64,000 bases of DNA from Marsupella aquatica (GCA_973895155.1 OZ316899.1:3431455-3495454), one strand, 5' to 3'. Shown: positions 24,270 through 49,396, counted from the first letter of the stretch. The notes: generated from the letters alone by a model not told the origin. Made by a program: numbers and translations.

Positions 24270-24284
24270 ACCCTAAACCCTAAA
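24252..24284. repeat. Head-to-head telomere-repeat scar (duplicate)
   Basis: Same sequence as 8011-8043. Confidence 0.9.
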
Positions 24285-25265: not shown

Positions 25266-25283
25266 TGGCGCTAGATGGAGGGG
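25266..25283 (+). promoter_or_regulatory. Primer-binding site
   Basis: TGGCGCTAGATGGAGGGG after the LTR and TTTT. Confidence 0.8.
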
Positions 25284-25329
25284 CATTTCTTAAGCCGTGA
25301 GATATGAAGTTAGAACGGAAGAGTAGGTA

Positions 25330-31300: not shown

Positions 31301-31496
31301 GCTTTACACTCGCTGGTTAGGACCCTTTAGAGTAACCATGATGTTCCCCAATGGCTCCGTACAATTGGCCAACATTACGGGAGAGGTATATCCAGTTCGC
31401 ATCCATTATGACCGCCTCAAGAAATACTATATGGACGAAGATAAAGTTGTTCGCGAGGACGCTTCACAATTAAGTGGGGAGCTATGTGATGCCTAG
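28254..31496 (+). pseudogene. pol: pol of A copy 2 with stops at 29265, 29667 and 31212
   Basis: Same domains as copy 1; two CGA>TGA and one CAG>TAG changes. Confidence 0.93.
31472..31484 (+). promoter_or_regulatory. Polypurine tract
   Basis: AAGTGGGGAGCTA before the LTR start at 31485. Confidence 0.85.
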
Positions 31497-34400
31497 ACAG
31501 GAATCACTCGGCCAGTTAAGTGGGTAAAGCAGGAAGGCACCCTAGGAACACCTTAGTATAGGGACAAAACAAGGAAAATATAAACAATTAGGGGCAACCA
31601 TGGAACCCGGGCCGAGGCCGGAGGTAAGGACGCTGAGGGTGAAAACTCGATTAGGGTTAGGGCGCGTTAAGCGTCGGCGGCTAGGAAGGATCAACGGGAA
31701 GAAGGACCGGCAGAGGAGAGGGGTAAGGAGCGCTTGCAGGAGATGGTGGCTCATTTGCGAGCACGAACTAGGCAGACGACTACGGGAGGCCAACTACTGT
31801 CAGCTGCTTAGGCAAGCACTCGGGGAGAGAGTAGATACCGACGATCGACCTAAGGAGGGTATGAGCAACGTCAATCAAGCGGCACATTTCTGGGGATGCT
31901 TGTTCGAACGGGCAACTGAGTACATCAAGACTTACGAGGACGAGGAATCAGAAAGGGCAGCTCAAGAACGGCAGGAGCTTGCTCGATTGTGGGAGCTGCA
32001 GAAGACGGCTTTCTTAGGAGGCGAACTCATCAAGGACGAGTTCCTGTGGACGCCTACTTCCAATCAACTCGACGATCTTCTGTTTTGCAAAGACAGCGTC
32101 GTCGGCATCCGAGAGGCCATCAAGAACTGCAATGACATACACTGGGAATTAAAGGGTAGCACGGAAAGGTGGACCCAGGCAACGGTGCTAGGAGAAACCT
32201 CCACGGCAGCAGAGATGAAGAGGAAGGGAGCCGTCAACGATGAAGCCACCCCGGCAAAAAGAACGAGGTCGGCGGCACCAAAGAAGACAGTCGGGCAGCA
32301 GAGCAGGAGGCAAGGAGAAGCCGAAGAGGAGGAGGTCGATCCCATCAAGGCCATTCCAACCAGGGATGACACCTGGAAGGGCTGGGCGGCAACCCTACCG
32401 GTGGAGGTGCAACTACATTTTGCAAGGGAGGAGGATGCATGCTTTACGGCCATGCAGACCAAGAAGTACCAAGGCTTCATGGCCGGATCCGGCTTAGAGG
32501 CCTTTGTAAGATTACCATGGCTGAAGCCGGAGGTACCGGAGTCAGACCTATTAGAATTCGTGGGGTCATGGGAACCCGAGACCAATTGCACGAGGATATA
32601 TGGGAAGGATTTCTTTCTTACTCCCAAGGTAATTGCCGAAGTGTTTGGCTTGCCGATAGGCAATAAGACCAAAGTTGATACCAGGAAGACCTTGCCTGAC
32701 AAGGAGTTCCGGTCGTTCCCCGGGCCATCAACGAAGAATGGCTTCTTCCGGAACACCTGCACCAACCCGCACATAGGAGAGATGATCGACTTCTTGCGGG
32801 TGACCATGCATTGTAACTTGCCGAGGGCAAAGATCGGCAAGGCACAGGTCTATCTGGCAGAGAGGCCAGACCCAAGCCGGGACTACAACGGGTACCTCCT
32901 CAACCAATTGAAGAAGATCTTAAAGGAGGAGCAGCAGGTAATCGGCATGGGGAGCGTGTCGCGGCTTGGCTATCACATGCCGCTGTTGTGCCGGTATGCC
33001 AGAGGTAAGACTTTTGCCCCAGTACTTCCCCTGCAGGTAAGGGCACCCGAGGAAGCTCCAACGCCGAGGCCGTTGGCTGAGAAGCCTCAACCACCTGTTA
33101 GCCCTACGATCGAGCAGGTGTTTAGGCCCAGGAAGGAGGACTTGCCGATGCAGCAACCAGGCATGCAGAGTCTGCTGAAACTACTGGAGAAAGAAAAGAG
33201 ATCGGCATCGGCAACAACAACGGCAACGGCAACAATGCAGGACACTACTACAGAGGTAGGCCTACACCGGCTCACAAGAGAAAACCCCTTTGCTGGAGAC
33301 AAGGAGAGAATCAGGCCGGAATCCAAGCCAGGTGTTCGAATGTATGTGGGAATCTCAAGCTCCCAATCTGAGGCAGAATTGCCTGAAGCTCCTACCGACG
33401 AAGAGGAGAGGGAGAAGCCGGACGTCCAAGAAGTAGAGGAGGCAGTGGAGGACTGCAGCCATGATAATTCCGGCTATGGGTCGGACCATCACGTTCCAGG
33501 AGTAAGGACCTGTGGCCGGTTTGTCCCCACACTTCCAAGGGTAGTGCGAGGGGACCCCAACCAGCAGAGTAGCCCTGAGTCTCCCCCACCAGATGTTGCT
33601 CCCCCGAGCTTTGACGGCATAAAACAGACGGTGCAGGAATTTCAGGAGCGAATCAAGCAGGAGGAGGAGGCAGCCCTGGCTAAGGAAAAGGATTTACCAG
33701 GAGGAGATTGGCCGGAGGACATCAGGCGGCTAGCCAAAAAAGGAAGCAAACCTCTAGCCATGATTGAAGAGATCCGCAGGACGGCTTGGGAGCAGAGGCC
33801 GCGATGGGCGATGCCGATCACTTCTACTTACTCCACCTACGCTAAGAATAGAGCCATGGAGTATGGTGAGATGTGTGGGGAACTTGCGCTCGGCATCTTT
33901 GGAGAGGAGTTGGAGGTAGGACCCTTTTTCCATAGGGAGCAGTTGGAGAAGCACCAATTAGAAGAAGCGGTGGCTTTAGAGAGAAGCAAGAAGGACGAGG
34001 TCATTCGGCGGCTTAGGAGGATGGAAGCCGAGATTGAAGATCTAAGGGCGGCCAAGAAAGCCCAAGATGAACTGCGGATTAAACGGCATGAGCTGAACAT
34101 CATGCAGGGGCAGTTGGACACCGCACAGGCTGATAATCAGAATATCAAGGATAAACTGACTCAGACGCAGGGAGAGTTGGCCGACACGATCAAAGAGAGG
34201 GAGAAGTGGAAGCGAGAGCTGAAGAATACAGAGGAGGCCCACATAACAGCCAACAGCCGGGCCATGGCGGAGACCCAAAGAAAGGAATGGGCGTTGAAGG
34301 GGGAGCTCAAGAAAATCCGCGGAGCCCTTGAGCAGAAGGAGGCCGAGTTAGGGAAATCCTATCAAGGGATTATGGCGCTGCAGCAGGAGCTTGCGTCCCT

Positions 34401-36146
34401 GACGGCCAGCTTCAAGGCCGACCTAAGGGAGAAGGACGAGATACTCGATCAGACTTACGCCAAGATGAACCGAATGGAGTCTGTCATCATTGCAGAGCTC
34501 GACAAGGAGCTAAGAGCAACCCGGGAGGAGAGGACTACCTTGAAACAAGAACGGGAGGAAGCCCAGAAGGAACTAGAGGAGGCGCGCAAGGACTTGGATG
34601 AGACCCAGGAGGAGTTGGAGGAAATCACGAGGAAGATGGAGAACCTCCAGCGGCGGGCCGACAACCAAACGGAGCGGCTGAAGAAACAAGCCGCAGTATT
34701 TAAGTGCTTGTCTTCATCAGGCCCAACTCCAACTGGGGCAACCAAGTTACCAGGAGTGGTACTGGCCGAAGAAAAAGTCGCGCCACCTGCACCAGTGCCG
34801 GAAGTAAGTGGGAAGGGGAAGGGACCAGCTGCCGAACCAGAAAAGAAGAAGAAGCGGAAACCTTCAGGGTCAAGGAGTAATCCGACTCCACAAGCCGTGG
34901 TGACCAAGGAGGTAGAACCAGCACCATCCTCCGGCATAAATACGGCAATAGATCTCGCTATCATCACAAGTGGGGGTGGTGCGGCCCAAGCCGAACTACT
35001 CAGTAATGAGGCCGGTATCCCAAATCCGCCTCTTGAGCAGGCCAGGGAGACCGTAGCCGAGGCTGAGGCCGTAACCGATTCCCGAGCCGATGCCGACGCC
35101 GATGGTGGACCCAGTCAGGCCGATGGAGAGTTGACTCAGTCAAGGGCAGGTAATCTGTCAGAGAATGAACCTACGGCAGTGGCTGAGGAGGAAGCGTTGG
35201 GGGCGTCCATTAAGGATCCACCACCGGTGTCGTGACGGTGCAAGGGTGTCGTTCCTTTTAGGGAGGGCGGACGTGGAGGGAGGAGGCGTGAGTGGGCAGG
35301 GCGGGCGCTGATCTCCAAGTTTAGGATTAGGATCAGGACCAGGAGCGGCCCTGACACTTAGCTTAGTGGGATTGCGGTTCCACTGGTAGGAGCAACACTT
35401 GTGCTCCTGCCTTGCTGTACATAGGTAGATTCGGGCAAGTAGATTACTGTTAGGTAGATTAGGCTTACGATGCAAAGAATGGCGGATCCACTACCAGGAT
35501 AAGTACCTGGGCAGCGGGGAGCTCAGGGCCTCTTCTTTAGCAAGTTTTTAGTTTGCACCAGCCGGGCTGGGATCAAGTAGTACGAGAAGCTCTCGGTTAG
35601 TCATACAGTGACCCTTGTGTATATTCATGTTTCCTCATGCCTAAGAGCTGAATAGAAATGGCCTCACGGCTTAGTTCGTAGAGCTTGTGTATGAGATGTA
35701 CTGTTTGTATGGCAAGTGCATGGTATGACTCAGTCAGAATGAGTCATTTTGCTATTTGTGTGTCGCATTAACTTGTGTGAAGAGTGCCCACATCAACCAG
35801 AAGGAAGGAAAGTAAGCAGGGGAGTGAGAGTTGGATGTGTCGAGCTGAGAGAGGTCTTAGCGGCTTAACCAAGCCTATTGGGGATCATTCCGGCGGCGGA
35901 ATCCAAACATACCTAACAAGACGGAGGGGAAGACAGGGGAAGGCCTAGATTAGGCCGGCTACGTATCTCATGACCCGATGAAGGATCTGTCCAGTATATG
36001 TGTGTAAAATGTTAATAGTAGTAGTAGAAGGTTAGCAGCGTCCCATGCCGCTAAGCCGCGGAAACGGCCTCGCCAAGCGCGAAACCTGCGGGAATCGGCT
36101 TGAGCTGGGGGTTTCTTGGGTTTAGGGAGCCATGGGACGCACCACA
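31485..36146 (+). repeat. 3' LTR of A copy 2 (4662 bp)
   Basis: TGTGATG...GCACCACA between the PPT and the TSD. Confidence 0.94.
31600..35235 (+). CDS. Intact LTR-encoded protein of family A (1211 aa, or 1124 aa from ATG 31861)
   Basis: Uninterrupted frame with a bipartite NLS-like motif (KRK-x10-KRTR), a central domain shared with the B protein, a long heptad coiled coil and no obvious transmembrane stretch. Confidence 0.88.
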   Translation: MEPGPRPEVRTLRVKTRLGLGRVKRRRLGRINGKKDRQRRGVRSACRRWWLICEHELGRRLREANYCQLLRQALGERVDTDDRPKEGMSNVNQAAHFWGCLFERATEYIKTYEDEESERAAQERQELARLWELQKTAFLGGELIKDEFLWTPTSNQLDDLLFCKDSVVGIREAIKNCNDIHWELKGSTERWTQATVLGETSTAAEMKRKGAVNDEATPAKRTRSAAPKKTVGQQSRRQGEAEEEEVDPIKAIPTRDDTWKGWAATLPVEVQLHFAREEDACFTAMQTKKYQGFMAGSGLEAFVRLPWLKPEVPESDLLEFVGSWEPETNCTRIYGKDFFLTPKVIAEVFGLPIGNKTKVDTRKTLPDKEFRSFPGPSTKNGFFRNTCTNPHIGEMIDFLRVTMHCNLPRAKIGKAQVYLAERPDPSRDYNGYLLNQLKKILKEEQQVIGMGSVSRLGYHMPLLCRYARGKTFAPVLPLQVRAPEEAPTPRPLAEKPQPPVSPTIEQVFRPRKEDLPMQQPGMQSLLKLLEKEKRSASATTTATATMQDTTTEVGLHRLTRENPFAGDKERIRPESKPGVRMYVGISSSQSEAELPEAPTDEEEREKPDVQEVEEAVEDCSHDNSGYGSDHHVPGVRTCGRFVPTLPRVVRGDPNQQSSPESPPPDVAPPSFDGIKQTVQEFQERIKQEEEAALAKEKDLPGGDWPEDIRRLAKKGSKPLAMIEEIRRTAWEQRPRWAMPITSTYSTYAKNRAMEYGEMCGELALGIFGEELEVGPFFHREQLEKHQLEEAVALERSKKDEVIRRLRRMEAEIEDLRAAKKAQDELRIKRHELNIMQGQLDTAQADNQNIKDKLTQTQGELADTIKEREKWKRELKNTEEAHITANSRAMAETQRKEWALKGELKKIRGALEQKEAELGKSYQGIMALQQELASLTASFKADLREKDEILDQTYAKMNRMESVIIAELDKELRATREERTTLKQEREEAQKELEEARKDLDETQEELEEITRKMENLQRRADNQTERLKKQAAVFKCLSSSGPTPTGATKLPGVVLAEEKVAPPAPVPEVSGKGKGPAAEPEKKKKRKPSGSRSNPTPQAVVTKEVEPAPSSGINTAIDLAIITSGGGAAQAELLSNEAGIPNPPLEQARETVAEAEAVTDSRADADADGGPSQADGELTQSRAGNLSENEPTAVAEEEALGASIKDPPPVS

Positions 36147-36689: not shown

Positions 36690-38444
36690 TATCTCTCTCG
36701 TCTATGGTTGGTACGACCCCTAACAATCTCCACCGCAGGGGAGAGGTCAAAAGAAGACCGGCCCTGTGTACCTAAACTGCCCTCCTGCCCACAGTCTACT
36801 AGGGCCTCCTCTTGCGTATTAGGCTCCTCCCCTCTATGATCTGCCTCCTCATCCTCCGCGATGGGCCGTGCCACTAACCCCTCCGAAGGAGTCCAATCCT
36901 CATGCACATGACATAAGATTTCATTTTCCCTTGTGCAAATAGTGGATGCAAAACCTAGCATAGCAAGAACCTAACCTGACTATGTAACTTACCACTGGGT
37001 GGTCCTCCGGGAGAGAGTTCAGCTTAGCCTGGAGGGCCACCGGGCCATAGCGTTTTGAATAGAGCTGCTCTTGCTCACTTGGCTCGGCATTGGCTCCAAA
37101 CTTGCGTTTCTGCAGGAAATTGGAGAACGTCATCACCACCATCATTAGTTACAGAGGTGCAAACGACGTTTTTGACTTAACGTCATCCAAATCAAGGTTT
37201 AGTGTTTAGCTGCCATATTAACGATTCAAGAACAACGTTAATTAAATGTAAAGTTGTGAGAGACAACGTTAGGTAGGAAGAACGTAGGATGGGGAGACGT
37301 AAATTGTGGCATGTACAACGTTAGAGGGGAAAAATGACGTTAAGTTAGTGTTCTCACCGCAGCGGCCAAAGCATGAACAAGCTGTGCTTTGAAGAGGGTG
37401 GGGGACTTACATAGGTTGCAAGGAAGCCTCGCCAGCCTCCCTGGCCCCAAAAATTGGTCACACGCAAGTGGCCATTCGATTTGCGGGCTGCAGCAGCTTT
37501 GTCCCCCATGTGTACTCGCTTGCCTACTGGGGTGTTAGGTGTTGCTTCCAACTCAGTCATGATCAACTTGAAGTTGGCCTCGCTCATTCCTTCTGGTTTC
37601 AGGTATTGCTCTATCCTTGGGCATCTCCTTTTTCAAACCTTGTGTCTCCATCTAAACCTCCAATCTGCAAGGTAGCCTACGATCTTCTGTCTGATGTGCC
37701 TGTAGTCTATTTCACGGCCGTTCCTAAACCCAGCCTGCACATCATTCAGGAGGAGCTAAAACTTCTTTGGGTTTTGCGCAAGATCCTTCCAAGTTGTCCA
37801 ACCAGGACAGTGCTTGGCACAACACGTCTGCACTTGATTTATGAGGGCCTTCTCATCCAAAACATCCGGCCTAGCATCAAATGCATCCAAGGTGATGGTT
37901 GGTAGTTTGTCTTGACTCACAGCAGTAGTTACAGGTCGCACAGGAGAAGGTCATCACTTCTTGTGGGAGTGACATTCACGTTGAGGTGAGTACCTCTCTC
38001 TTCTGTCTGCCCTTGCATCTCGCTCTGTTCTTCTTCTTTTGTATCTGCCTCTATTGTGTGTATCTGCATCTCTATGCTCCTTCCCTTTCCCCTTCCGTCT
38101 TCTCTCATCAAGGTTGCTATTGCTGCTGTGTGGTCTATCACAATGCCTCCTCTGCCTATGAGAGTCCTGATCCTGATTAGGCTGGAATCTATCATGTGCT
38201 ACCCTGACCACACTCTTGATTGGGGTCCCACTAGGTGCCTAAGAATCAGGCTGCATTCCATTGAAGGTAGGATCACCCCATCCATCATCTGGTAGGGATG
38301 AGAAGGAGTTGAGAGCATCAAACAAAGGCCCCCCAACCTCCCCCAAGAGCGCTGCATCTTTGGTTTCCACATAACATCGAGGGCAGGAGCATTGGCCTCT
38401 ATATTTTCCAGGTACTCCAGAAACTAAGACTCCTTGCTTCCTTT
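36690..38444 (-). pseudogene. Decayed multi-exon gene, possibly CACTA TnpA/Ptta-like; its 5' part lies beyond element B at 61675-61845
   Basis: Broken frames with W.WK and KPEGMSEANFKLIM...ARKSNGHLRVTNFWGQGG motifs; a possible GT-AG intron at 37358-37113; the frame reads across the empty site of B. Confidence 0.35.
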
Positions 38445-38802
38445 TGTGACGCTGCCGGTACGGCGGTTAATGAGTGATTCAGTCTAACTGCGCTCGGCAC
38501 GTGCGTTAGGTGGGTCTTAGGCCGCTATTATTAGCATAACAACAGTATTTAGGTAATCATTAGGGGTAGGACATCATTAGGCAATAAGGGGGACTTCAGG
38601 TTCGGGCTGGCGGCGGGTCGCTATTCGCACACCCGGGTTACGAGCGTGGAGGGGCCCCTCCCTCGGGTCCGTATAACGAACTTAAGGAAGCGGCCACTGA
38701 CGCACGCTGACTCAGACCGGCGGAGTGGCCGGTACACCACAAGCGTGAGCGGTTCAACCTATGGGCGTCGAGGAGACGTCGGGGATCGACAAGCCCTCAA
38801 AG

Positions 38803-38810
38803 TATAAAAG
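38803..38810 (+). promoter_or_regulatory. Candidate TATA box for the LTR gene
   Basis: TATAAAAG about 100 nt before ATG 38911, followed by a CT-rich leader; also present at about 58019. Confidence 0.5.
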
Positions 38811-38910
38811 GGGCGTCAACCCTTTGTAGTGCACCAGTCCATCAGTCCGCGCGCCAGCTTCGACCCCAGCTCTCTCGTTCTCTCTAGGTTGCCACTACTA
38901 TCTCCTCTGA

Positions 38911-41565
38911 ATGTCGCACACGATCCTCTCCAGCTCGGCCATTCGATTCTGGACGCAGTTCCTATCTACCGGAAGGCACTTGGCCGATTCATTGAAACAC
39001 GCCAACCCGCGCCGATACGAGATCGAACGCGAATACGAGAGAGCCATCCGCCTAGCAGGACGACACCACTACATCCTTAACTTTGACTACCCGTCTCAGA
39101 GCGAGCTTTACCGACCAGCTGAGGTATCTGGGTACTTCTTCAACGGAGACAAATATATCGGGTTCTGGGAAGCATTGCTTCGGCTTCCGGATGAGGTCTT
39201 CAATATCCCGGGTACAATCGACCTGCAGCGACATCACTTCGACCACATCCCTGCCCAGGTTTGGGCTGTCATTAACGGCGAGTCCAGTACCAACCGTTCG
39301 ACAAGGGCGTCCGCACTCGCTTCGGAGAACTTCTACCAGCACCTGCAGAGCTTCATGGGAACTCGGCCATCAACCAACATGACCAACTCAGCCGGACCTG
39401 TACCCGTACCCGTACCCGTGCCCGTGCCCATGCAACCCCAGCCTCAACTTCAGCTTCAGCCTCAGCCGCAGCCTAGCCAAACCCCACCACCTATCACCCA
39501 GCCAGCACAGGTACGCTCCGTCATCAACGCTGTGGATCTTAGCGATGATGACGAGGCTACCCCACCCTTGACCAGGCGGCCCAGAGGAACAAGCGCGCGG
39601 GGGGCCGACACTATATCGTCCCCACCCCCTGCTCTGACCCCAGGAGCGGCCCCAGCAGACAACATAGTGATCGTGGCCGCCCCGGGCCCGTTACCAACCG
39701 CAGTGGCACTCCCCAGGCCCGATCGGGAGGATGGGGAAGTATCACCTTCCCCGAGTCAGTCACGGGGAAAGAAGAGGAAGGAATCCGCCACTGCATCCGG
39801 GTTACCGTTGGCCACGGTAGCCGTAGCCAAGGTGTCGATGCATTGCATGGGGGAAAACGTTCATAGCAACATCCTCCATCCCAAGCATGCGGTGTATCTG
39901 AAGACTCAGGGATTTGAGCACCTCACCTCTCTCCCCTGGAACACTTGCAGGTACTACGGGGAGGACATGACAGAATTCGTCAAGAATTATGACGACGTAC
40001 GTCAACAAACTCGGCTGCGGGGAAGGAATATGTCCCTCACAGAAGAACGGCTCAAGATGATCTTCGTGTTACCCAAAGGTGACCATCGAGTCGAATCACG
40101 GGCTCCCGGGGGCAAGGAGGCCAAGTACCAATCTTCAAGTTTTCCCTCAGAGGGATCAGTAGACAACGGGTTCGTGATGAGGACCTGCCTCATGCCCGAG
40201 ATAGCTGAGCGGCTGGAGTTCCAGAGGTACGCTCTCCACATGATGGAACCCCGGGGGGAGATCTCCGCCACCCAGGTTATCCAGGTCGAGAACTATCGAC
40301 CTAGGAAATGGGCGTCGTACTTCGCTAAGAAATTCCATGAAGAGATGGAGCGGCGAAGGAAGACGCTGTACATTGGCGGGAAGGCGTATTTTGCTAGCCA
40401 TATCAAAATCATTCTTGAGTGGTACGCCCGGTTTGATCGACGAACCCTTCCCCGCATCAACGTTACAAAGCTGGTCCCAGCTAGGTGGGTTTTTCCGGCA
40501 TTGGAGAGACGGCCCCAACCCGAGGCCCGAAGTCCAGTGGACACGCCAGCTTCACCCACCCCACCTCCACAAATAGCTGTAATCGTAACCGAGGAGGCGC
40601 CGGAGGGGTCGGTCGTCGCAACCGTTGATGCGATCCAACTAGCCGGGCTAAGTACAGAAGTTGGTACGGCAGAGGTCTTACCCGAACCCGGGTCTCCCAA
40701 GGACCCGCCGGTGGCAATTCCGGAGAACCGGACATCGCTGCAGGAGGACACTCCAGCCCCTTCCAACGTTATGTCCCCAGGGCTGGACGTCACTGCCCCG
40801 GCCCCTGCGCGTGTTGATGTCTGCCCGTGCCCAAATCCGGACAGGCACAACTTGGACCACCCGGAACTCTTCGTACAGGGTACGTTTCTGAACGGGCTTC
40901 TGGGAGATTTCTCTCATCAAATTGCCCGGGATACCGGGGAGTTCATGGCCCAGAAGGTAGCCTGTTTCTTCAATCAGGAGTTGGTTGCCGCCGTAAAGGC
41001 AGGTCGGGCCCAGTCGGAGGCCCTTCAGAGGATAGAGCGGTACCGGGTGGAGTCCGTGTACCTAAAGAACGAAGTGGCGGCTCAAGAGGCTGAGCTTCTG
41101 CAACTACGACCCAAGGTTGTAGCCGCCGATGAGTTGTTAGCAAAGGCGTACGCTCTTACCGCCCTAGCCGAACAGGCCAAAGCTGGGAACGAGGCCGAGA
41201 TTACACGACTCCGGAACCAGATTGACAGTTTGAAGAAACAAGCTGTCACCTGGCAGAAAGACCTGGAGGAGGCCGAGGAGCGAGCCCAGCGGGACGCGAC
41301 AGAGATAGCCACGCTGCAGGCCGAGATGGCGCGGCTCCAAACCGAGGCCGAGAAGCAGGACCAGCTGGCGAGTAAACTGACGAGCGACGCCCAGCAGCTG
41401 GAGGAGGCATGTCAGGAGGCAGCAGAGGAGACGGACGCGGCGAGGCGAGAGAACGAATCTCTGCTGGACCAGGTCCAGCTCCTCAAAGCGGACAATGACA
41501 GGCTTCGAAGGCAGCGGGATGGCCGTTCCCATTCGGGCGGCTCTGGCAAGCGTGCCAGGCATTAG
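38911..41565 (+). CDS. Intact LTR-encoded protein of family B (884 aa)
   Basis: Open frame wholly inside the LTR; RGKKRK and KRARH basic motifs; central domain alignable with the A protein; C-terminal coiled coil. Confidence 0.88.
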   Translation: MSHTILSSSAIRFWTQFLSTGRHLADSLKHANPRRYEIEREYERAIRLAGRHHYILNFDYPSQSELYRPAEVSGYFFNGDKYIGFWEALLRLPDEVFNIPGTIDLQRHHFDHIPAQVWAVINGESSTNRSTRASALASENFYQHLQSFMGTRPSTNMTNSAGPVPVPVPVPVPMQPQPQLQLQPQPQPSQTPPPITQPAQVRSVINAVDLSDDDEATPPLTRRPRGTSARGADTISSPPPALTPGAAPADNIVIVAAPGPLPTAVALPRPDREDGEVSPSPSQSRGKKRKESATASGLPLATVAVAKVSMHCMGENVHSNILHPKHAVYLKTQGFEHLTSLPWNTCRYYGEDMTEFVKNYDDVRQQTRLRGRNMSLTEERLKMIFVLPKGDHRVESRAPGGKEAKYQSSSFPSEGSVDNGFVMRTCLMPEIAERLEFQRYALHMMEPRGEISATQVIQVENYRPRKWASYFAKKFHEEMERRRKTLYIGGKAYFASHIKIILEWYARFDRRTLPRINVTKLVPARWVFPALERRPQPEARSPVDTPASPTPPPQIAVIVTEEAPEGSVVATVDAIQLAGLSTEVGTAEVLPEPGSPKDPPVAIPENRTSLQEDTPAPSNVMSPGLDVTAPAPARVDVCPCPNPDRHNLDHPELFVQGTFLNGLLGDFSHQIARDTGEFMAQKVACFFNQELVAAVKAGRAQSEALQRIERYRVESVYLKNEVAAQEAELLQLRPKVVAADELLAKAYALTALAEQAKAGNEAEITRLRNQIDSLKKQAVTWQKDLEEAEERAQRDATEIATLQAEMARLQTEAEKQDQLASKLTSDAQQLEEACQEAAEETDAARRENESLLDQVQLLKADNDRLRRQRDGRSHSGGSGKRARH

Positions 41566-42478
41566 CGGCGGAGTAGGAATAGATTAGGATTAGGATTGGC
41601 TTAGTCAGGCTCTTGGGACAGGCACCTGCCTTAGGTACAGTAGCGCTGCCCTACTATCCAGCCTGCGTAGATTAGGATCTTCTAATAAGACACAGCCGTT
41701 TTCCGGCCTGACTGTCAGCTTAGTTAGGACCTTAGTCAGCGAATCTTCGGCGAGAGGACACCCCGTTCCTCGGCTCTTAGTATTTAGTGCACCCCTCGGT
41801 AGAGGCAAGGGGGGGGGGTTTTTAGTTTCAGAGTCGGACATCCGCGGGACATGCGGGGAGTCCCGACCTCTGGGAATGACAGAGTACCAAGGGGAGGGGG
41901 TAGGACTAAGCTCGCCGGGCGAGTGCGGAGCCGGGCTCCGTTGTAGTGTGCACCCTCGGCCTTGAACCTGTGCATTCCAGGGCTGTCGTGTCAACTAAGT
42001 GTACGCATATGTTCCCTTTGTAGTAAAATCCTTTCCCATCATTTTCCTTCGTGTAAATCGAGATTGTATGCATGTGTGTGCATATGTGTGTGGGTTTCTC
42101 GTATATGGGTGGCAGCGCCAGGCCGAACGCACTACCCGAGACGTGCACAGGGTGCAGCCTGCGGGTAAGTGGTTGCGAGCACGGGTTGAGGACCTGTATC
42201 ATCGAATCCGGATCGAAGGCGGACAACACGAAGGCTTAGAAGCCCTTAAGCCGGGGTTGATCCTGCTATCGACTAAGGTACGTTCCGGCGGCGAAACACA
42301 AACCATACCTAGGTGGTGTTTGTATTTAGCAGTATGCGCACTTAGCGCTAGTTTACGAGAATAAGGTGCATTACGTGCTTCCCTTCCTGCCCGAACCCTC
42401 AGATTTACGAGGGATGTGCCCGTCTAAGCTGAAGTCTGAGTTAAGGCCGAAGCCTACGACGTGACATAGCCTTTGTTT

Positions 42479-42496
42479 TGGCGCTAGATGGAGGGG
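42479..42496 (+). promoter_or_regulatory. Primer-binding site of B (identical 18-mer to A)
   Basis: TGGCGCTAGATGGAGGGG 12 nt after the LTR end. Confidence 0.8.
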
Positions 42497-42589: not shown

Positions 42590-43359
42590 ATGCCCGTCAC
42601 TCGTTCTCAAGCAGCTTACTTGAGGAGATTGACCAGCGAACGAGAAAGTGCAACCACAACAAGCTCCGACTCGTCGGGCTCGGAGGACTCGCAATCGTCC
42701 CGACGTATGAACATACCCCCGGGATCTTCGGGGTCCGGTTCGACCGGCCCTGCTGCGGTTCCACCACCACCACCACCACCACCACCACCTATGGCAGCCG
42801 CTCCACCGGTGGCCCGCGCTGCTCAGGCGCCTCCACAAATATCACAACGATCGCGATTTCATTATCGACCTTTCAAAGGGCGTCATGGGGATGATCCGGA
42901 TGAATGGTTGGATGAGTTTGAAGCCACTGCTAAAGCTAATGGGGAAGACGCCATTAAGCTAACCGTCCTCCCGGGAGTGATGCGGGGAGAAGCTCGTCCA
43001 TGGTACAACTCGTTACCACCCGGGACTACCTGGGCACAATTCCAAGCTGCATTGCTGCAGGAGTTTCGTGCCATTGGATCAGAACAGCGTTCTCTATTAA
43101 AGATTGGCCAGCTTCGCATGGGAAAAAAAGAGTCCCTGCGGAAGTTCATTCATAAGTTTCAGAAACTTGCGGCCAAGATCCCGCCCAGGCCAGGAGACGC
43201 GCTCCAGCTTACATGGTTCCTTCATGGTTTGCCCACGAATATGCAATTCTGGGTACACCAGAATAATCCAATTTCAATGCAGGCGGCCATAGCGTGCGCC
43301 GAAACTTACCGGGAATCCACCTATAACTCCCGACGGAGCCAGCGAGCACGCCGCAAGAA
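42590..43359 (+). pseudogene. gag: gag of B, 3'-truncated
   Basis: ISQRSRFHYRPFKGRHGDDPDEWLDEFE aligns with A gag; the sequence switches to antisense A integrase at 43360. Confidence 0.9.
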
Positions 43360-46300
43360 CCTGGAAACCTACTATACCTACTGTCATAAAGTAGCACAAG
43401 ATCACCGGTATGAATACTAACTACTTTCAACTTTTTATCATACTGCTGCTTCATGATATTCTGTCTATATTCTACTCTCTCGGCTGAAATCATTCTCGCT
43501 TCCTCTAAAGCTTCTAACCTATATTCTCGCTCCTTTAGGCTCTCCTCCGCTGAGGCTCTTTCCTCAATTGTAACTTGAAATGTCGGTATCTCAAGTTGCA
43601 TGGGTACCAGGGCTTCTTGTCCAAAGGTTAAGAAGAAGGGTGTATGACCGGTAGTGGATTTATAGGCAAGATTGTAAGCAAAAACAGCAGCAAACAATTT
43701 ATCGTCCCAATCAAGTTTGTTCTGAGCTACTGTTTTGTTCAATATCTTTCCTATAATTCCGTTTGCTCGTTCTGTCAACCCGTTTGCCTTTGGATGGTAG
43801 GGAGTAGTAGGCCTATGTTTAACTAAATACTGCTCATTTAAACGACTAATTATATCATTCAAAAAATGGGTTCCTCTATCACTAACTAATTCTAGGGGTG
43901 CTCCATACCTGGTGAAGATCTGCTCATACATGAATCTAGCCGTAGTAATTGCATCATCCTTCGTTGTTGGTCTGGCCTCTACCCATTTAGTTGCATAATC
44001 CGTAGCCAGGATTATGTACTTGTTCCGTCGAGGGTGGGTCAGTGGTTTCAGAGGTCCAATGTAATCAATACCCCACTTCTCGAATGGTGCCAGAGGTAGA
44101 ATAGGGTGCAGTGGATGCCTGGTGGACGCCCTTGGTCCTCCCGCTCGTTGACAAGGATCGCATTGTTTGATAAACTGATAGACATCTTTGTGCAAGGTGG
44201 GCCACCAGTAACCGGCATTTAATATCTTCTTAGACGTGGTTACTGGGGCAAAATGTCCTCCGGCCTCCTCTCCATGCATGGCCCGTAGGACTCGTTTTAC
44301 CTCTCTCTTTTCCAAACATCTTTGAATCGTGTCGTTGATTCCATGCTTGTGCAGTATGCCTTTAATGCACTGATACTGTCTGACCTTCCGCACAAAGACT
44401 GCGGCTTGCTCTCGGCTTAATCCTGGCTGTAATCTGGAAGTGCTAAGAAATTGTAAAATCTCAGGGTACCATGTACCAGCTATTTCCACAACGAATAGCT
44501 CCTCGTCGGGGAATCAATCATCGATGCAATCCGTGGCAGGTTTACCTGTGATCCTTGAAAAGAAGTCGGCATTGGCATGTAACTTTCCCGGCTTGATTCT
44601 CAGCTCATAGTCAAACTCCTGTAATAGCAAAATCCATCTTGCTACTCTGCCTGTAAGGTCCGGCTTATTGACTAGGTACTTCAAACTTTCATGATCGGTA
44701 TGAAAGATTACCTTGTAAACTAGTAAATAATGCCTAAACTTTTTACAAGAATAAATGACTCCTAATGCTTCTCTTTCCGTGGTAGAGTAGTTCCGTTCGG
44801 CATCGGCAAGCTGACGGCTTGCGAAGTATATGGGATGGTCCCTTCCTTTTTCATCCAACTGACTTAGTACTGAGCCAATACAGAAGCCCGAGACATCTAC
44901 AAAAACATGAAAATCTTTGTTCCAGTCCGGTGCTATCATGACTGGGGCCTCTACTAACATCTGCTTCAATTCTACCACCGCTGTGACTCGTTCGGGTGTG
45001 GGTTCGAAGTCTGCTCCTGCCTTGAGCATGTTGGTTAATGGTAAAGCTAGCTTGGCAAAATCCTTGATGAACCGGCGATAGTAACCAATGCATCCCAAGA
45101 AGGATCTTACATCCTTTATGTTCTTAGGTTGCATGATATCTAGCCATACTGCTAGCTTACCTTTGTCAATCTCAATGCCCTTCCTTGATACCTTGTGACC
45201 TAGTAGCACCCCCTCGGTTACTGCAAAGAAACATTTATCTGGGTGTAACTTGAGACCCACCTCTCTACATCTCATGAAGGTTTTCCTGAGGTATTTAGCA
45301 TGTTTCGATGCCTTCCCGAATACTGCAAAGTCGTCAATGAAGATTTCCATGAACTTTCTCAAGTAATCATGAAAAATGTTCACCATTAATCGTTGAAACA
45401 TAGCTGGTGCGTTGCAGAGTCCAAACGGCATACGATTGAAGACATAGATTCCCCATTCCGTGATGAAGGCCGTCTTGATTTGGTCTTCCTGCCGAATCCT
45501 GATTTGGTTATAACCAGAGTATCCATCCATGAATGAATATAGTTCATGACTGGCTACCATGTCTAGTACCATATCAGTAAACGGTAAAGGAAAATGGTCT
45601 TTTAATGTTGCTTCATTCAGCTTCCTGTAATCCTGACAAACCCGGATCTTGGGTTTACCATCGGGTCCAGCTTTCTTGGGAACTATCACAATTGGAGACA
45701 CCCAGTCTGAATGCAGGACTGGAGTGATGAATCCAGCTTCCACTAGTTTGTCGATTTCTGTTTTGACCAGCAGGGAATACTTCGGGTTCATCCTTCGAAT
45801 TGGTTGTCGAAATGATTTGGCTCCTAACATGAGATCAATTCGATGTTCCCCTAGTGTTGGATCTACTCCCTTTAGATCTTGGTGACTCCATGCAAACACA
45901 TCCTGAAATTCAATCAATAAGTCACTGATCTCTTTCTCGAGCTCAGGTGCTAGGTTTCTCCCTAAGTTCAGTTCTCTTCCCTCTCCTAAGTCGAGCTTCC
46001 GATATTGCCGTGCTTGGATCATATTAATCTGCTTCTTCAAATTCGGGTCCAGTTCGGCTTCTAGTCTCTCTCATCTCATGCCTCCATAAACTGGAATCTC
46101 GGCTGGACTAGCCGAGTCGATCCCTTCCTTGGTGTCCATAGATTGTCCCCTTGCCGGTCTATTCGGTTTTGAATTGGTGGTCGGCTCCCCTTCCTGCCTT
46201 GGCTCTGGATCGTGTCTGTCCATCTCATCCACCTCTTGCTCCTGAGAGTTAGGCCGTTGTGCTCTCTCGGCTTCTAATAGGGCCTCAATTTGTTCTGCCC

Positions 46301-46403
46301 TCGTAATCGGCTTGTATGTCGATCCCTTGGTATTTAATTCCTTGCCGATGATCGATGGCGTTGTGAACCCTGCCGGCTCTGCCACAACGCCTGCAGAAAA
46401 TCC
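43360..46403 (-). pseudogene. pol: pol of A copy 3 (stops at 46071 and 44514; 3'-truncated)
   Basis: RT-RH-INT fragments in ORFs 46071-46427, 44514-46040 and 43209-44489. Confidence 0.9.
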
Positions 46404-49327
46404 ACTGTCCCTGCTACTGCTCCCCACTTAGCCGTTTCATCCAATTGGTCTACATCCTTTACTTCCTCCGGAATTGCAGCTAAAAAGGTGGATTCTATTG
46501 TAAAGCAGTCCTCGACCTCTTCGTCTTCTTCTTCCAAGTCACCTTCCATTGGTTCTTGCCATAATCCGCTGGGGGGTACTTCTGGTCCAAAGACACCTTC
46601 TTCGGTTAGGTTAGTGAGGCATTCTAACCAACGTACTTCATCGGCTGACTCCAGTCCACTGTCGTACCCATCTACTTCCCTTATGCTTTTCCTACGGTCA
46701 TCCTTACTGTCCCAGGATACCGTGATAGAGGGGGTCCCGAAAGTGAACTGCTTTTTACCCCAATCTTCTATTACCTCGGCTAGGTACAGCCATGGCCTAC
46801 CAATCAATAGCCGGAATGACGTAGGATTTACCGGCTTCATTACTACATAGTTAATGCTAAAGAAGATACCTCCTATCTCTGTCTTGATGCCGGTTAACAC
46901 TCCCGTGGGAATGACCTGATATCCATTGGCCATGTTCAACACTCTTCCAGTCATCTCCGGTGTTAGACCCCACCCTTTTGCTGTTGAATCAATCATAATA
47001 CATACCCCTGATCCTCCATCGATGGGTACCCGTAGTAATAATTCTCCTTGAATCATTAAGGGTAATGCTGGGGCTCCTTGATCTTCTTCTATCATTAGTA
47101 CGTCGGATCTGGTTGCTACCTTGGGTAACCTCAGCTTGCCGAGAATAGCCTTCCTTAATTGTTTCCGGAAGTACGGGCTATTTTTCAATAGTTGACCTAC
47201 TGTTGCCGAGACTCTAGATTCTAGTACATCTTTAGCCAGGTCATAGGGAACAATCGGCTTCTCCTCTGGTGGTGTTTCCGTCTTGGATTCGGCCAGTTTT
47301 GCCACGCTAGTCTCCACAGCTGTTGGGTCTTCCGAAGCAAACAATGCTTTTGCTCGTTTTACATCCTTGGCAATGGCTTCGGTATTCTCCAGGGTTTCTA
47401 ATTCTCTTAGTTGTTCCTTAACACTAGCCGTAACAGAGGGGTAGAACAACTTAGGATGATCTCGATTGAAGTCGCTATCTTGTGAAGGATTGGTTTCACT
47501 GGTGGGCTCATGGCTTACCTGTATTGCCGGAGCCCTCCCTTCTCCTTCTGTTGATGTTGACGAAGAGTCGATCCTTTCCTCCGTAACCTTCCCTTTATTT
47601 TTGGCCAGCCCATCCCACCTTTCCTTCCTTCTGGTAGATCGAGTAGAGACCCGGTAGCAATCATGATCTAAATCCTCCTCTGAGAAGGTTGATAGGGCTT
47701 CGGCCTCATCATCAGATGGTACGAACTCTGCCTCGGCATCCTCTTGCCATCCTAGTTCGATGTGGTTGATTTGAACTCCTCCGGGGGTAGTACCTGGCGG
47801 TAAGATCTTGATCGGCAAAAGCTTATGATTTGCGGCCAGGCCTGCCAACCAAGTAGGACATTGCCCTAGCATATGACCTTCCTGTCGGCATCCCATACAT
47901 AGCTGAGCTGGTTGTCCATCACCCTGTTTGCGTGCATTCGGGCATTCTCTAGCAAAATGGCCAGGTTGACCACAATTATAGCACGCCGCAAATCTTTGCA
48001 CATTCGGCCTAGGAGGTACTGACGGGTTCTGAATAATCCGAGGATACATCTCTCCTGGATTGTTCCTTAACCCTGACCATAGAGATGCAGGTCTGTTGGA
48101 TAGGTCTCGTGCTCCAGTCTCACTGATGCCGAAAACACTATCAGCGGCATCTCCTAAAAAGTACTCTACTTCTCCCTGACATGGTCTGATCTCGGCCACA
48201 TGCCGAACATGATTAGTATTAAGCTTAGGACACGCATCTTTATGGTGTCCGGTTTTATAACATAAGGCACACCATACAGAGCTATCCTCCTGTACTACCT
48301 TCTTCTTTGGTTTTACCTCTGCAATGATAGCCTTAAGTTGCTCGGTAAGGGCTACGATGTTATCTGGTGGCTTAGCCTCCATCTTGACTTTCGTCTTCCC
48401 TCTCCTTCTGCCCTTCCTTTTCCTAGTTTTTTCTTCTTCAGAACTAGAAGATGACTCACTCTTGCTACTCCCACTATCCGAGCATGACTTATCACTTCTA
48501 GACTTCTTAGAATGTTTCTTCTTCTTATCTTTTTTCTTATGGGGTGATCCCTCCTCTGATGAGGAACTCTCAGACTTAAGCTGTTTCTTCCGGCTTGTGA
48601 TATCTGCATTAATGTATAATTGAATATCCTTAATTGCTTCGGCTAAAGTCTCTGGGTTCTCCTTCCTAATTGCAAAACTCATCTTCTGTGGCAAAGCATT
48701 CACCAACCATTGAAGTTGCATACCTTCAGATGCATTGGTCTTTGTACGTCTTACCAGTTTCTGAAAGCGTTGCAAGAACTTCCTGAAGGATTTGTTCTCC
48801 TTGAACCGAAGTTGTCCCAACTTCAGCACTGCTAGTTCTGAAGTTCCAATGGGTCGAAACTCCTTAACAAAGAGTGTTTTGAAGATATCCCAGATGGCTT
48901 GATCTTCCACATCTAATGCTCTGTACCAAGGCCTAGCCTCACCCTTGAACAGGTCGGGAAGAATCTGCATCTTGATGGCCGATTCTCCATTTGCTGCAGT
49001 GGTTCCCTCGAAATCATCCAACCATTCGTCCGGATCCTCATCTCCTCTCCCATGAAATGCCTTGTAATGTATGCGCGACCGCTGGCTCAATCTGGTCCCT
49101 GGCCTCTCGTCTGGCCGTGCCTCTGGTTCCCCCATGTCGGTTGGAGACTCACTTCTCCTTACCGACTCTTCTTCTGGTATGTCTTCTTCGACACCACTTC
49201 CAGTTTCGGAGCTACCAGCTCTTTCTGCCCCTCTCAGTCGCTGTGTATCATGCCACCCGGCGAGCTGCTGCAGTCGAGCTCTCTCCCGTTGAATCACTCT
49301 TTCTTCCCTCGGCGTAAGGTCAGTCAT
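46334..49327 (-). CDS. gag: Gag-protease polyprotein (997 aa), copy 3
   Basis: Same motifs as the other copies; frameshift heptamer at 46397-46403 with the stem conserved. Confidence 0.92.
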   Translation of the reverse strand: MTDLTPREERVIQRERARLQQLAGWHDTQRLRGAERAGSSETGSGVEEDIPEEESVRRSESPTDMGEPEARPDERPGTRLSQRSRIHYKAFHGRGDEDPDEWLDDFEGTTAANGESAIKMQILPDLFKGEARPWYRALDVEDQAIWDIFKTLFVKEFRPIGTSELAVLKLGQLRFKENKSFRKFLQRFQKLVRRTKTNASEGMQLQWLVNALPQKMSFAIRKENPETLAEAIKDIQLYINADITSRKKQLKSESSSSEEGSPHKKKDKKKKHSKKSRSDKSCSDSGSSKSESSSSSEEEKTRKRKGRRRGKTKVKMEAKPPDNIVALTEQLKAIIAEVKPKKKVVQEDSSVWCALCYKTGHHKDACPKLNTNHVRHVAEIRPCQGEVEYFLGDAADSVFGISETGARDLSNRPASLWSGLRNNPGEMYPRIIQNPSVPPRPNVQRFAACYNCGQPGHFARECPNARKQGDGQPAQLCMGCRQEGHMLGQCPTWLAGLAANHKLLPIKILPPGTTPGGVQINHIELGWQEDAEAEFVPSDDEAEALSTFSEEDLDHDCYRVSTRSTRRKERWDGLAKNKGKVTEERIDSSSTSTEGEGRAPAIQVSHEPTSETNPSQDSDFNRDHPKLFYPSVTASVKEQLRELETLENTEAIAKDVKRAKALFASEDPTAVETSVAKLAESKTETPPEEKPIVPYDLAKDVLESRVSATVGQLLKNSPYFRKQLRKAILGKLRLPKVATRSDVLMIEEDQGAPALPLMIQGELLLRVPIDGGSGVCIMIDSTAKGWGLTPEMTGRVLNMANGYQVIPTGVLTGIKTEIGGIFFSINYVVMKPVNPTSFRLLIGRPWLYLAEVIEDWGKKQFTFGTPSITVSWDSKDDRRKSIREVDGYDSGLESADEVRWLECLTNLTEEGVFGPEVPPSGLWQEPMEGDLEEEDEEVEDCFTIESTFLAAIPEEVKDVDQLDETAKWGAVAGTVDFLQALWQSRQGSQRHRSSARN

Positions 49328-49396
49328 TACCTACGCTTCCGTTCTAACTTCATATCTCACGGCTTAAGAAATGCCCCCTCCATCTAGCGCCAAAAA

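Follow-up and report, generated by a model that had tools for sequence, protein, structure and literature searches.

The 5′ LTR of a Ty3/gypsy (Metaviridae) LTR retrotransposon in the liverwort Marsupella aquatica contains an intact 884-codon open reading frame (ORF) that fills 66% of its length. The element (family B) spans positions 38445–61674 of the window, the 64,000-nucleotide stretch of DNA that was analyzed, and 38445–42466 is its 5′ LTR. Very probably, the LTR cistron belongs to the element lineage, in which it takes the same position in several families, and is not a passenger. LTRs are usually viewed as non-coding, regulatory U3-R-U5 modules, whereas here a conserved gene of 2.7–3.6 kb, maintained by selection, is found inside them. 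The features of the family B element are as follows.

Positions 38440–38444, no strand: left target-site duplication (TSD) CCTTT, read directly; the same pentamer is at 61675–61679.
Positions 38445–42466, plus strand: family B 5′ LTR, 4022 bp, TG...CA, 99.1% identical to 57661–61674.
Positions 38803–38811, plus strand: candidate TATA box TATAAAAGG, the sole TATA[AT]A of the LTR, present in both LTR copies.
Positions 38911–41565, plus strand: intact ORF of 884 codons inside the LTR, with homologues in the family A LTR and among database proteins (64).
Positions 39883–40431, plus strand: conserved globular core (residues 325–507), the sole conserved stretch when families A and B are compared.
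Positions 41011–41562, plus strand: C-terminal coiled-coil region (residues ∼701–884), from sub-threshold Pfam matches and composition.
Positions 41684–41689, plus strand: AATAAG, candidate polyadenylation signal from a motif scan, 119 nt past the ORF stop.
Positions 42479–42496, plus strand: primer-binding site (PBS) TGGCGCTAGATGGAGGGG; the same 18-mer follows the family A and Calypogeia fissa 5′ LTRs.
Positions 42590–43359, plus strand: family B gag, N-terminal part only (Pfam Retrotrans_gag, 3.8e-9).
Positions 43360–53919, minus strand: nested family A fragment (5′ LTR and internal region), 98.1–98.7% identical to family A copies.
Positions 49397–53919, minus strand: LTR belonging to the nested family A fragment; its LTR ORF is broken (compared to 31600–35235).
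Positions 53950–57693, plus strand: family B pol (RT, RNase H, integrase and C-terminal region; Pfam RVT_1, RT_RNaseH, Integrase_H2C2).
Positions 57648–57657, plus strand: polypurine tract (PPT) AAGCAGGGAG, with homologous context in family A, C. fissa and an environmental contig (L007).
Positions 57661–61674, plus strand: family B 3′ LTR, 4014 bp, from alignment to the 5′ LTR with its ends read.
Positions 58127–60775, plus strand: ORF copy in the 3′ LTR, broken (compared to the 5′ LTR copy).
Positions 61675–61679, no strand: right TSD CCTTT, read directly.

The two direct repeats aligned over their full length with 28 mismatches and three gaps (8 nt in sum), and both copies started with TGTGACGC and ended with GTGACA. 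The CCTTT pentamer flanks the element on both sides (the chance of a random 5-nt match is ∼1/1024). The PBS, which begins with TGG, is located 12 nt beyond the 5′ LTR, and the PPT 3 nt ahead of the 3′ LTR. The first-pass annotation had reported a TSD, TG/CA ends, a PBS and a PPT at these positions, and all four boundary marks were found there. When tRNA genes were sought in the window and the other loci, none was found, and the PBS remained without a matching primer tRNA. In the Pfam analysis, gag adjoins the PBS and integrase adjoins the PPT. Family A shows the Ty3/gypsy domain order, with integrase last; the same order is seen piecewise in family B, where a nested element splits the gag/pol interior. 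This insertion cut gag, the rest of which is missing together with the protease region. Family B pol (∼67% nucleotide identity to family A pol) has at least two breaks and now consists of three ORFs in two frames, with its final codons extending 33 nt inside the 3′ LTR. The nested fragment, which was compared with family A copies 8044–15056 and 16053–19907, is in the opposite orientation, truncated on its 3′ side and devoid of a 3′ LTR, and has Gag, RT-RNase H and integrase domains. The ORF in its LTR differs from that at 31600–35235 by one frameshifting indel, one in-frame indel and one premature stop. Neither intact elements nor solo LTRs were seen within the window.

The 884-codon ORF is wholly within the 5′ LTR, upstream of the PBS, and its copy in the 3′ LTR is downstream of the PPT. 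Given the base composition, a run of 884 open codons has a chance of ∼4e-15. A stop codon is present in frame directly 5′ of the ATG, hence the ORF is an independent cistron rather than a continuation of pol. The copy in the 3′ LTR is broken by a single premature stop together with a 6-nt indel that keeps the frame, with a further three synonymous and six non-synonymous differences, and in this element the intact ORF is found solely in the 5′ LTR. It had been proposed that the ORF is part of the LTR, not an internal extra ORF, and that every element carries two copies of it. The former is borne out, with the same layout in family A and C. fissa; the latter applies to the design of the element, but not to this decayed insertion.

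A second family with the same layout (family A) is present in the window, and its best preserved LTR and ORF are as follows.

Positions 31485–36146, plus strand: family A LTR, 4662 bp.
Positions 31600–35235, plus strand: family A LTR ORF, 1211 codons, open, homologous to the family B ORF and with equal domain order.

Further family A LTR copies were found at 1–3668 (cut by the window start) and 15244–19907, together with 3702-bp deletion variants at 5319–9020 and 21560–25261; the window contains a large tandem duplication (1–19907 = 16240–36146). The LTR ORFs of families A and B showed 28% identity over 185 residues (E 4e-19), and comparison of their LTR DNAs yielded no HSP, even at E 1e-3. 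In both families the ORF measures 2.7–3.6 kb and makes up 66–78% of the LTR, and the PBS 18-mer and the PPT context are common to both. Among the families that share the LTR gene, pol proteins are 56–67% identical and the LTR DNA is unalignable.

The layout extends to other genomes. In Calypogeia fissa (locus L002), a ∼4.9-kb 5′ LTR starting at ∼8748 contains an ORF homologue (10001–11557), followed by a PBS (13656) and a PPT/LTR start (∼19937), and both PPT and PBS match those of family B. The direct repeat of this locus (8902–10288 = 20172–21557) enters the ORF before the locus ends. The environmental contig L007 probably shares the layout, as judged from a homologous PPT context, a TGTG start at 12942 directly after pol, and a 679-codon ORF that begins 453 nt past 12942 and aligned with the family profile (hhalign probability 80%, E 1.4e-5, 186 columns). 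The 5′ LTR of L007 is apparently truncated, and repetition of the ORF was not seen there. When 1.84 billion representatives were searched, 64 relatives of the ORF were obtained at E≤1e-3. Every one of the 30 named relatives looked up is from Calypogeia fissa or Riccia sorocarpa, both transposon-rich liverwort annotations, and the closest pol relatives are also liverworts. In Riccia sorocarpa gene models, the core domain adjoins a DDE_Tnp_4 fragment. The PBS 18-mer also follows LTR-like ends in 14 unrelated metagenome contigs. Gene predictors take such LTR ORFs for host genes, examples being the annotations of Calypogeia and Riccia, and elements of this kind would be overlooked or wrongly split by LTR finders run with a default upper limit on LTR length.

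The sole TATA[AT]A of each LTR precedes the ORF in both families (position 359 of 4022 in family B and 95 of 4662 in family A). In family B, TATAAAAGG is located 108 nt 5′ of the ATG and is followed by a CT-rich leader, so that the candidate promoter proposed in the first-pass annotation is present; another AATAAG is found at LTR position 3916. The family A TATA lies just 21 nt 5′ of the first ATG, and a later start codon would therefore be needed. In the C. fissa LTR, no TATA[AT]A precedes the ORF, the putative L007 LTR has none throughout, and the TATA argument concerns two related families.

These signals point to a model in which a TATA-type promoter in the first few hundred bases of the LTR would drive a monocistronic mRNA that would encode the accessory protein and end at the signal 3′ of the ORF, and transcripts reading through the 5′ LTR would provide the genomic RNA. 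The ORF would then be in R/U5, 5′ of gag, like the upstream extra ORF of Ogre or Retrosat2, but with the PBS after the ORF, and every LTR, future solo LTRs included, would be an expressible gene. That the LTR is such a complete RNA polymerase II transcription unit, with the ORF in R/U5, is to us only slightly short of an even chance. We know of no precedent for a kilobase-long R or a 3.5-kb U5.

It is also possible, at a probability clearly below even, that the ORF is an accessory gene embedded in U3, comparable to MMTV sag or HIV nef, with promoter, R and U5 all in the ∼900 bp past the ORF. The ORF would be within a 3.1–3.7-kb U3 and 3′-terminal on the genomic RNA. Its mRNA would be a spliced or a subgenomic transcript, or would start at an internal promoter of the ORF itself, and the arrangement would have originated by a shift of the polypurine tract upstream of a former 3′ extra ORF. 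Athila and Tat, which are related lineages, often have such 3′ extra ORFs (PMC7264820, PMC11963269). The ∼900 bp left after the ORF in families A (35236–36146) and B (41566–42466) is an ordinary plant LTR size, the ORF is always directly behind pol and PPT, and the 115 nt from the family A LTR start to the first ATG leave scant room for a promoter. However, the LTR tail is devoid of TATA[AT]A in family B and in most family A copies, the sole motif being upstream of the ORF, and in family B a textbook TATA with a pyrimidine-rich leader is directly 5′ of the ORF, although promoters without TATA are frequent in plants.

Whichever segment holds the ORF, the LTR is an extreme stretch in terms of the limits of reverse transcription, and U3 or R/U5 necessarily measures several kilobases. 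Each insertion would bring two copies of the accessory gene, which would persist in solo LTRs after LTR-LTR recombination. Survival in solo LTRs offers a route to disperse, and perhaps domesticate, a transposon protein.

The first-pass annotation had suggested a dN/dS analysis of the ORF across copies. Among family A copies, the LTR ORF yielded dN/dS values of 0.32–0.51 (Nei-Gojobori), not near 1, with synonymous change in excess (p from 2e-5 to 0.05). The comparison values were 0.29–0.38 for gag and 0.23 for pol by the same method. In family A copies, then, the LTR gene is under purifying selection on par with gag. Since two thirds of the LTR are coding and selected in an active lineage, neutral-clock LTR dating is questionable.

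It is very unlikely that a gene of the host or of another transposon was captured by the LTR and has no role for the retrotransposon. Capture of gene fragments by LTR retrotransposons is known, and the DDE_Tnp_4 neighborhood in Riccia sorocarpa indicates that the domain is not bound to one kind of element. Against capture, at least three and probably four families, in at least two species, have the gene in the same place, its dN/dS among recently active family A copies is like that of gag, and 30 of the 30 named relatives looked up come from transposon-rich liverwort annotations. That the 4-kb repeats are not LTRs, but a segmental duplication or two gene-bearing 4-kb elements flanking retrotransposon debris, is hardly credible: a large tandem duplication does occur elsewhere in the window and the family B interior is disrupted, but the exact TG/CA ends, the matching 5-bp TSD, a PBS and PPT that are correctly placed and oriented and common to family A and C. 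fissa, and gag beside the PBS with integrase beside the PPT argue against it.

Genes in LTRs are known from retroviruses, where MMTV sag is wholly in U3, and HIV/SIV nef and foamy-virus bet overlap U3. As in the liverwort elements, these accessory ORFs are in the terminal repeat and are consequently duplicated at both ends. In contrast, the retroviral ORFs measure ∼0.6–1 kb, compared with 2.7–3.6 kb and 66–78% of the LTR in the liverwort elements, and the liverwort carrier is a plant retrotransposon without env. Functional gene sequence inside LTRs is also present in Cassandra TRIMs, whose LTRs hold a 5S rRNA gene, and in Ty1, whose gag start codon is in the 5′ LTR. However, the gene in Cassandra is short and yields a Pol III RNA, and that in Ty1 comprises just the first gag codons; neither is a complete multi-kilobase protein gene. 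Searches of Pfam, the PDB (sequence and fold) and BFVD revealed no similarity of the ORF to retroviral accessory proteins. MMTV sag is mentioned in two earlier papers (PMC4667437, PMC9412291).

Plant Ty3/gypsy elements carry extra ORFs, namely ORF0/ORF1 5′ of gag in Retrosat2, RIRE3/8 and Ogre, and 3′ ORFs in Athila and Retand (PMC3485330, PMC7264820, PMC11963269). These elements resemble the liverwort ones in their long LTRs (>3 kb in Retrosat2) and in having a lineage-specific accessory ORF beside gag-pol. The extra ORFs of Retrosat2, RIRE3/8, Ogre, Athila and Retand are nevertheless between PBS and PPT, in the internal region, whereas the liverwort ORF is within the repeat. This agrees with the earlier statement that the extra ORFs of Athila, Ogre and Retand are outside the LTRs. 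The accompanying suggestion that the layout had not been described also stands within the sources covered: no earlier account was found in the full-text literature or the plant extra-ORF reviews searched (Repbase, REXdb and GyDB were outside this search).

The encoded protein comprises a variable N-terminal part, proline-rich linkers, a well-folded core of ∼190 residues and, at its C-terminus, a long coiled coil. Several basic clusters occur in it, and the family B product has no transmembrane segment. AlphaFold2 modeled the family B core (39865–40440) with a mean pLDDT of 94.1 and a pTM of 0.89, and the family A core with a pLDDT of 85.7. In the coiled-coil region, Pfam matches to coiled-coil families at residues 754–868 were below threshold, E/K/R/Q/L/A account for 67–70% of the residues, and Pro for 0–1%. 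No significant known relative of the core was found in Pfam, the PDB (sequence and fold) or BFVD.

In the PDB fold search with both cores, the sole match with TM >0.2 was VANC21, an anti-silencing factor of a transposon, in its DNA-bound form (9lnj_A); this match is weak and not significant (TMq 0.43 and 0.44, Foldseek E 0.9–2.2, probability 0.15–0.30), and a PDB sequence-profile search with the ORF did not match VANC. VANC is reported to resemble the PMD protein MAIN in structure and to have a coiled-coil oligomerisation helix (PMC13547354). It is a transposon accessory protein with a globular domain and a coiled-coil helix, as predicted for the liverwort ORF, but its carrier is a dicot DNA transposon of the Mutator-like type. 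We tentatively suggest, while regarding it as doubtful, that the LTR-gene protein could be a nuclear, oligomeric, nucleic-acid- or chromatin-binding factor, VANC/PMD-like and acting in trans for its own family. The full combination is unlikely, namely that in this liverwort Ty3/gypsy lineage the LTR would be a whole gene (promoter, 2.7–3.6-kb ORF and terminator), whose short transcript would yield a VANC/PMD-like chromatin or anti-silencing factor and whose read-through transcript would yield the genomic RNA. If it holds, R (or U5) would be kilobases long, and each insertion and solo LTR would seed another expressible copy of the factor. Were the weak VANC/PMD link true, anti-silencing-type transposon factors would extend to retrotransposons of an early-diverging lineage of land plants.

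Collinear sub-threshold matches to PF20167 (Transposase_32) were obtained with 2 of 35 family members, the best with E 0.0058 and 16.9 bits vs. a cut-off of 45. With a true Transposase_32 member, hhalign aligned the domain start alone (E 0.077, probability 0.7%). PF20167 occurs in a Ty3/gypsy protein model of Vicia villosa, and the similarity of the liverwort core to this domain is weak and collinear.

In a self-comparison of the window, the Ty3/gypsy element of family B (38445-61674) was bounded by direct repeats of 4022 bp (38445-42466) and 4014 bp (57661-61674), which differ by 28 mismatches and 3 gaps (8 nt in all), giving 99.1% identity. Both repeats start with TGTGACGC and end with GTGACA, and a CCTTT pentamer lies directly outside them (38440-38444 and 61675-61679). 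The first-pass annotation had proposed such a self-comparison, had placed the four boundary marks (target-site duplication, TG/CA ends, primer-binding site [PBS] and polypurine tract [PPT]) at these repeats, and had described an 884-aa ORF filling about two thirds of the LTR. All four marks were found at the positions claimed, and the whole ORF lies between the repeat ends. The features of the element are as follows.

38911-41565, LTR ORF, 884 open codons, entirely within the first repeat, 66% of repeat length
42479-42496, PBS TGGCGCTAGATGGAGGGG, 12 nt past the first repeat
42590 onward, gag (Pfam), after the PBS
43360-53919, nested family A fragment of ~10.6 kb in opposite orientation, 5′ LTR and internal region without 3′ LTR
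53950-57693, reverse transcriptase (RT), RNase H and integrase (Pfam), up to the PPT
57648-57657, PPT AAGCAGGGAG, 3 nt ahead of the second repeat
58127-60775, copy of the LTR ORF in the 3′ LTR, with a single premature stop and a 6-nt indel that keeps the frame

An open frame of this length would be expected by chance with a probability of ~4e-15, given the base composition. An in-frame stop stands directly ahead of the ATG, so the ORF is a separate cistron; a pol extension or frameshift product was ruled out, because stop codons close the frame between the LTR start and the ATG. It is highly probable that 4-kb LTRs here contain a complete long gene. The location of gag after the PBS, followed by RT, RNase H and integrase up to the PPT, gives the Ty3/gypsy order. 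The C-terminal part of gag and the protease region are absent, pol is broken at least twice, and the two LTRs diverge by 0.7%. The damaged interior and the broken ORF copy in the 3′ LTR show that this element is a decayed insertion.

The same layout was observed in family A, the second Ty3/gypsy family, which makes up the bulk of the rest of the window and whose pol shares ~67% nucleotide identity with family B pol. Its LTRs and LTR ORF are the following.

15244-19907 and 31485-36146, family A LTRs, 4662-4664 bp
5319-9020 and 21560-25261, deletion variants of the LTR, 3702 bp
31600-35235, LTR ORF of up to 1211 codons, beginning 116 nt into the LTR

No nucleotide similarity between family A and family B LTR DNA was detected even at E 1e-3. 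The two ORFs have a common core of ~185 residues (28% identity, E 4e-19) and an identical domain order, and the families share the PBS 18-mer and the PPT context. Homology of the N-terminal regions was considered and rejected, since no significant similarity was found there.

Positions 1-36146 form a tandem segmental duplication with a period of 16,239 bp (1-19907 matches 16240-36146 at 99.27%), in which every unit comprises 1.65 kb of spacer and one full family A element, and which extends over at least 2.2 units. Both array copies have a 5′ LTR of 3702 bp and a 3′ LTR of ~4663 bp. The ~990-bp deletion in the 5′ LTRs cuts out the coiled-coil part of the ORF and leaves an 864-codon frame open. 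The family A gag ORF (997 codons) is intact in three of three copies (9089-12082, 25330-28323, and 46334-49327 on the minus strand), and pol is interrupted in each of the same three. The frame that follows, in the -1 register, shares 94 nt with the gag end, the arrangement that a programmed frameshift would call for. The units diverge unevenly (gag dS 0.0045 vs. pol dS 0.0355), a mosaic pattern suggestive of recombination or gene conversion. Flanks resembling a target-site duplication were seen only at the outermost edges of the array (AAACG / AAATG). Directly past the family A 3′ LTR (3669-3716 and 19908-19955) are 48 nt that match, in reverse complement, the beginning of a B-type LTR (93.8%); the remainder of that LTR was not found. 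It thus seems that a family A element either landed in a B-like LTR or recombined with one.

Relatives of the ORF were then recorded in other genomes. A word-indexed protein search with the whole family B ORF, or with residues 315-515, returned no matches, and no identical record turned up for three window proteins in an exact look-up. An exhaustive HMMER search of 1.84 billion representatives with an alignment of the ~190-residue conserved core yielded 64 relatives (25 of them below E 1e-10), and all the named ones belong to two liverworts, Calypogeia fissa and Riccia sorocarpa. The nearest pol relatives are likewise liverwort sequences, from C. fissa (64-66% identity), Riccia (51-56%) and Marchantia (44-47%). 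A liverwort is therefore almost certainly the source of the window. The loci were searched for the core with a profile HMM of the core alignment. One C. fissa locus (L002) has the ORF homologue inside the LTR, as listed here.

~8748, start of the 5′ LTR, ~4.9 kb
10001-11557, ORF homologue, within the 5′ LTR
13656, PBS, identical to the window PBS
~19937, PPT context and TGTGAGGC start on the 3′ side, directly after pol

The direct repeat of this locus (8902-10288 and 20172-21557, 93.9%) has already entered the ORF where the fetched DNA stops. At the other C. fissa locus (L001) the homologue lies ~4 kb downstream of pol, and the LTR limits could not be set. An environmental contig (L007), with a pol 56% identical to that of family A, provides a probable further case.

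12942, homologous PPT context and TGTG start
16825, LTR end

A 679-codon ORF begins 453 nt past the TGTG start; hhalign aligned it to the family profile with 80% probability (E 1.4e-5). The 5′ LTR of this contig is cut by another element, so that only the last 1.7 kb is present twice; uncut, the LTR would probably measure 3.9 kb. An intermediate state, with the ORF outside a 1.7-kb LTR, was rejected because the PPT context and TGTG lie directly after pol and the nested element accounts for the cut 5′ LTR. The inserted element, a different Ty3/gypsy element, occupies 1-5403 on the minus strand, and a gene with DUF659/ZBED-type (hAT-like) domains lies downstream (21862-22958, minus strand).

The ORF homologues on two Logan contigs and one ENA contig (L003, L004 and L005; DNA or RNA assemblies) lie on stretches with none of gag, pol, PBS or PPT nearby and carry no information on the layout. 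The Riccia locus (L006, CM100799.1) is a multi-exon gene model combining a DDE_Tnp_4 fragment and the core, with no clear LTR context. Two Riccia gene models (P0050 and P0058) hold a DDE_Tnp_4 (Harbinger-type) transposase fragment and the core as separate exons; such models reflect either chimeric annotation or the presence of the core in a second kind of transposon. Recurrence of the layout in family A, C. fissa L002 and probably L007 marks it as a lineage trait, not an accident of one copy.

The first-pass annotation had also proposed measuring dN/dS across ORF copies. Global statistics from MAFFT are unreliable for the deletion-variant LTRs, and the Nei-Gojobori comparison of family A copies was used instead. 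The values for the LTR ORF were 0.32-0.51, below 1 (synonymous excess, p from 2e-5 to 0.05), with 0.29-0.38 for gag and 0.23 for pol. The two family B copies differ by 3 synonymous and 6 non-synonymous changes, too few for dN/dS. The core is kept between families A and B despite saturation of the surrounding LTR DNA, which indicates selection over a longer time as well. We show that the layout is real, recurrent and selected, and the LTR ORF is likely to be a functional accessory gene of the lineage.

Coding sequence can lie inside LTRs, as in retroviral sag, nef and bet, and those ORFs are several times shorter than the liverwort ones. No homology between sag, nef or bet and the liverwort ORF was found with Pfam, PDB sequence, PDB fold or BFVD searches. 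The extra ORFs of plant Ty3/gypsy elements, which the earlier reading had placed outside the LTRs, are indeed internal in all the cases reviewed (PMC7264820; PMC11963269), as is ORF0 of Retrosat2, a family with long LTRs; in contrast, the liverwort ORF is inside the LTR. A recent survey of Tat elements that covers liverworts makes no mention of LTR ORFs, and a phrase search of the literature for ORFs in or within retrotransposon LTRs gave nothing relevant. The novelty suspected in the first-pass annotation thus stands within the literature searched (Repbase, REXdb and GyDB being outside that scope), where a long gene borne by the LTR appears to be undescribed so far.

The family B ORF matched no Pfam family above threshold, only sub-threshold coiled-coil entries, and its product has no transmembrane or hydrophobic segment, which rules out an Env-like protein. 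Its sequence contains proline-rich linkers and several basic clusters, and the C-terminal region has coiled-coil character. AlphaFold2 models of the core, given the family alignment, reached a mean pLDDT of 94.1 (family B) and 85.7 (family A, longer construct). A PDB sequence-profile search returned coiled-coil noise only, a BFVD fold search found nothing, and Foldseek gave no significant PDB match to either core model. The only true superposition in both Foldseek searches was DNA-bound VANC21 (9lnj_A), with TMq 0.43 and rmsd 6.6 for family B, and TMq 0.44, rmsd 6.1 and top rank for family A; all others had TM <0.2. Pfam Transposase_32 gave a below-threshold match, collinear with the start of the core, in 2 of 35 family members, and hhalign aligned the same stretch, not significantly, to a true Transposase_32 carrier (a Vicia villosa Ty3/gypsy model). 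A recent atlas of Arabidopsis transposon proteins (PMC13547354) reports a structural relationship between VANC and the PMD protein MAIN, an oligomerisation helix of coiled-coil type in VANC, and a globular part joined to a long helix in the accessory proteins of Athila and ATLANTYS. The three leads are weak and agree in direction; we take them as grounds for a hypothesis, not for assigning the protein to a family. A VANC/PMD-like role in chromatin is conceivable, at clearly less than an even chance.

The candidate LTR promoter noticed earlier finds a counterpart in a canonical TATA, TATAAAAGG, located 108 nt ahead of the family B ATG and followed by a pyrimidine-rich leader. In the LTRs of each family, the sole TATA[AT]A motif common to all copies is the one located upstream of the ORF (position 359 of 4022 in family B, 95 of 4662 in family A). 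An AATAAG lies 119 nt past the family B stop codon and a second one ~100 nt before the LTR end; in both families ~900 bp of LTR are left after the ORF. A bacterial promoter/terminator scan was disregarded, this being a plant genome. We tentatively favor, at somewhat below an even chance, the LTR as a single transcription unit: a 5′-terminal promoter would produce the mRNA of the accessory protein, read-through of the 5′ LTR would produce genomic RNA, and the ORF would lie upstream of gag on that RNA. The extra ORF would then be placed as in Retrosat2/Ogre (ORF0/ORF1, PMC3485330), although there the PBS precedes the extra ORF and in the liverwort elements it follows it. Against such a unit, the C. 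fissa and L007 LTRs are without an upstream TATA and the family A TATA is too near the first ATG. Furthermore, we know of no precedent for a kilobase-scale R or U5. The alternative, a U3 gene like sag or nef whose genomic promoter would lie within the final 900 bp of the LTR, is a serious possibility that we hold less probable. DNA sequence by itself does not show where the ORF stands relative to U3, R and U5, and both the mechanism and the role of the protein are inferred.

Exact matches to the PBS 18-mer were present in 14 JGI metagenome contigs (L008-L021), usually 1-2 nt past an LTR-like "...TTCTTAAC" end, and none of the 14 resembled the liverwort elements in gag, pol or the core. These matches look like the PBS of unrelated elements, which seem to use the same primer tRNA in other organisms. 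ARAGORN found no tRNA genes in the window or the loci. The 12-nt spacer between the family B 5′ LTR and the PBS (42467-42478) holds CCTTT at 42470-42474, the pentamer that also forms the target-site duplication, probably by chance; the family A spacer has only 4 nt (TTTT). In both families the pol frame runs into the 3′ LTR, by 12 nt in family A (15244-15255) and 33 nt in family B (57661-57693), so that the PPT and the first LTR bases are coding.
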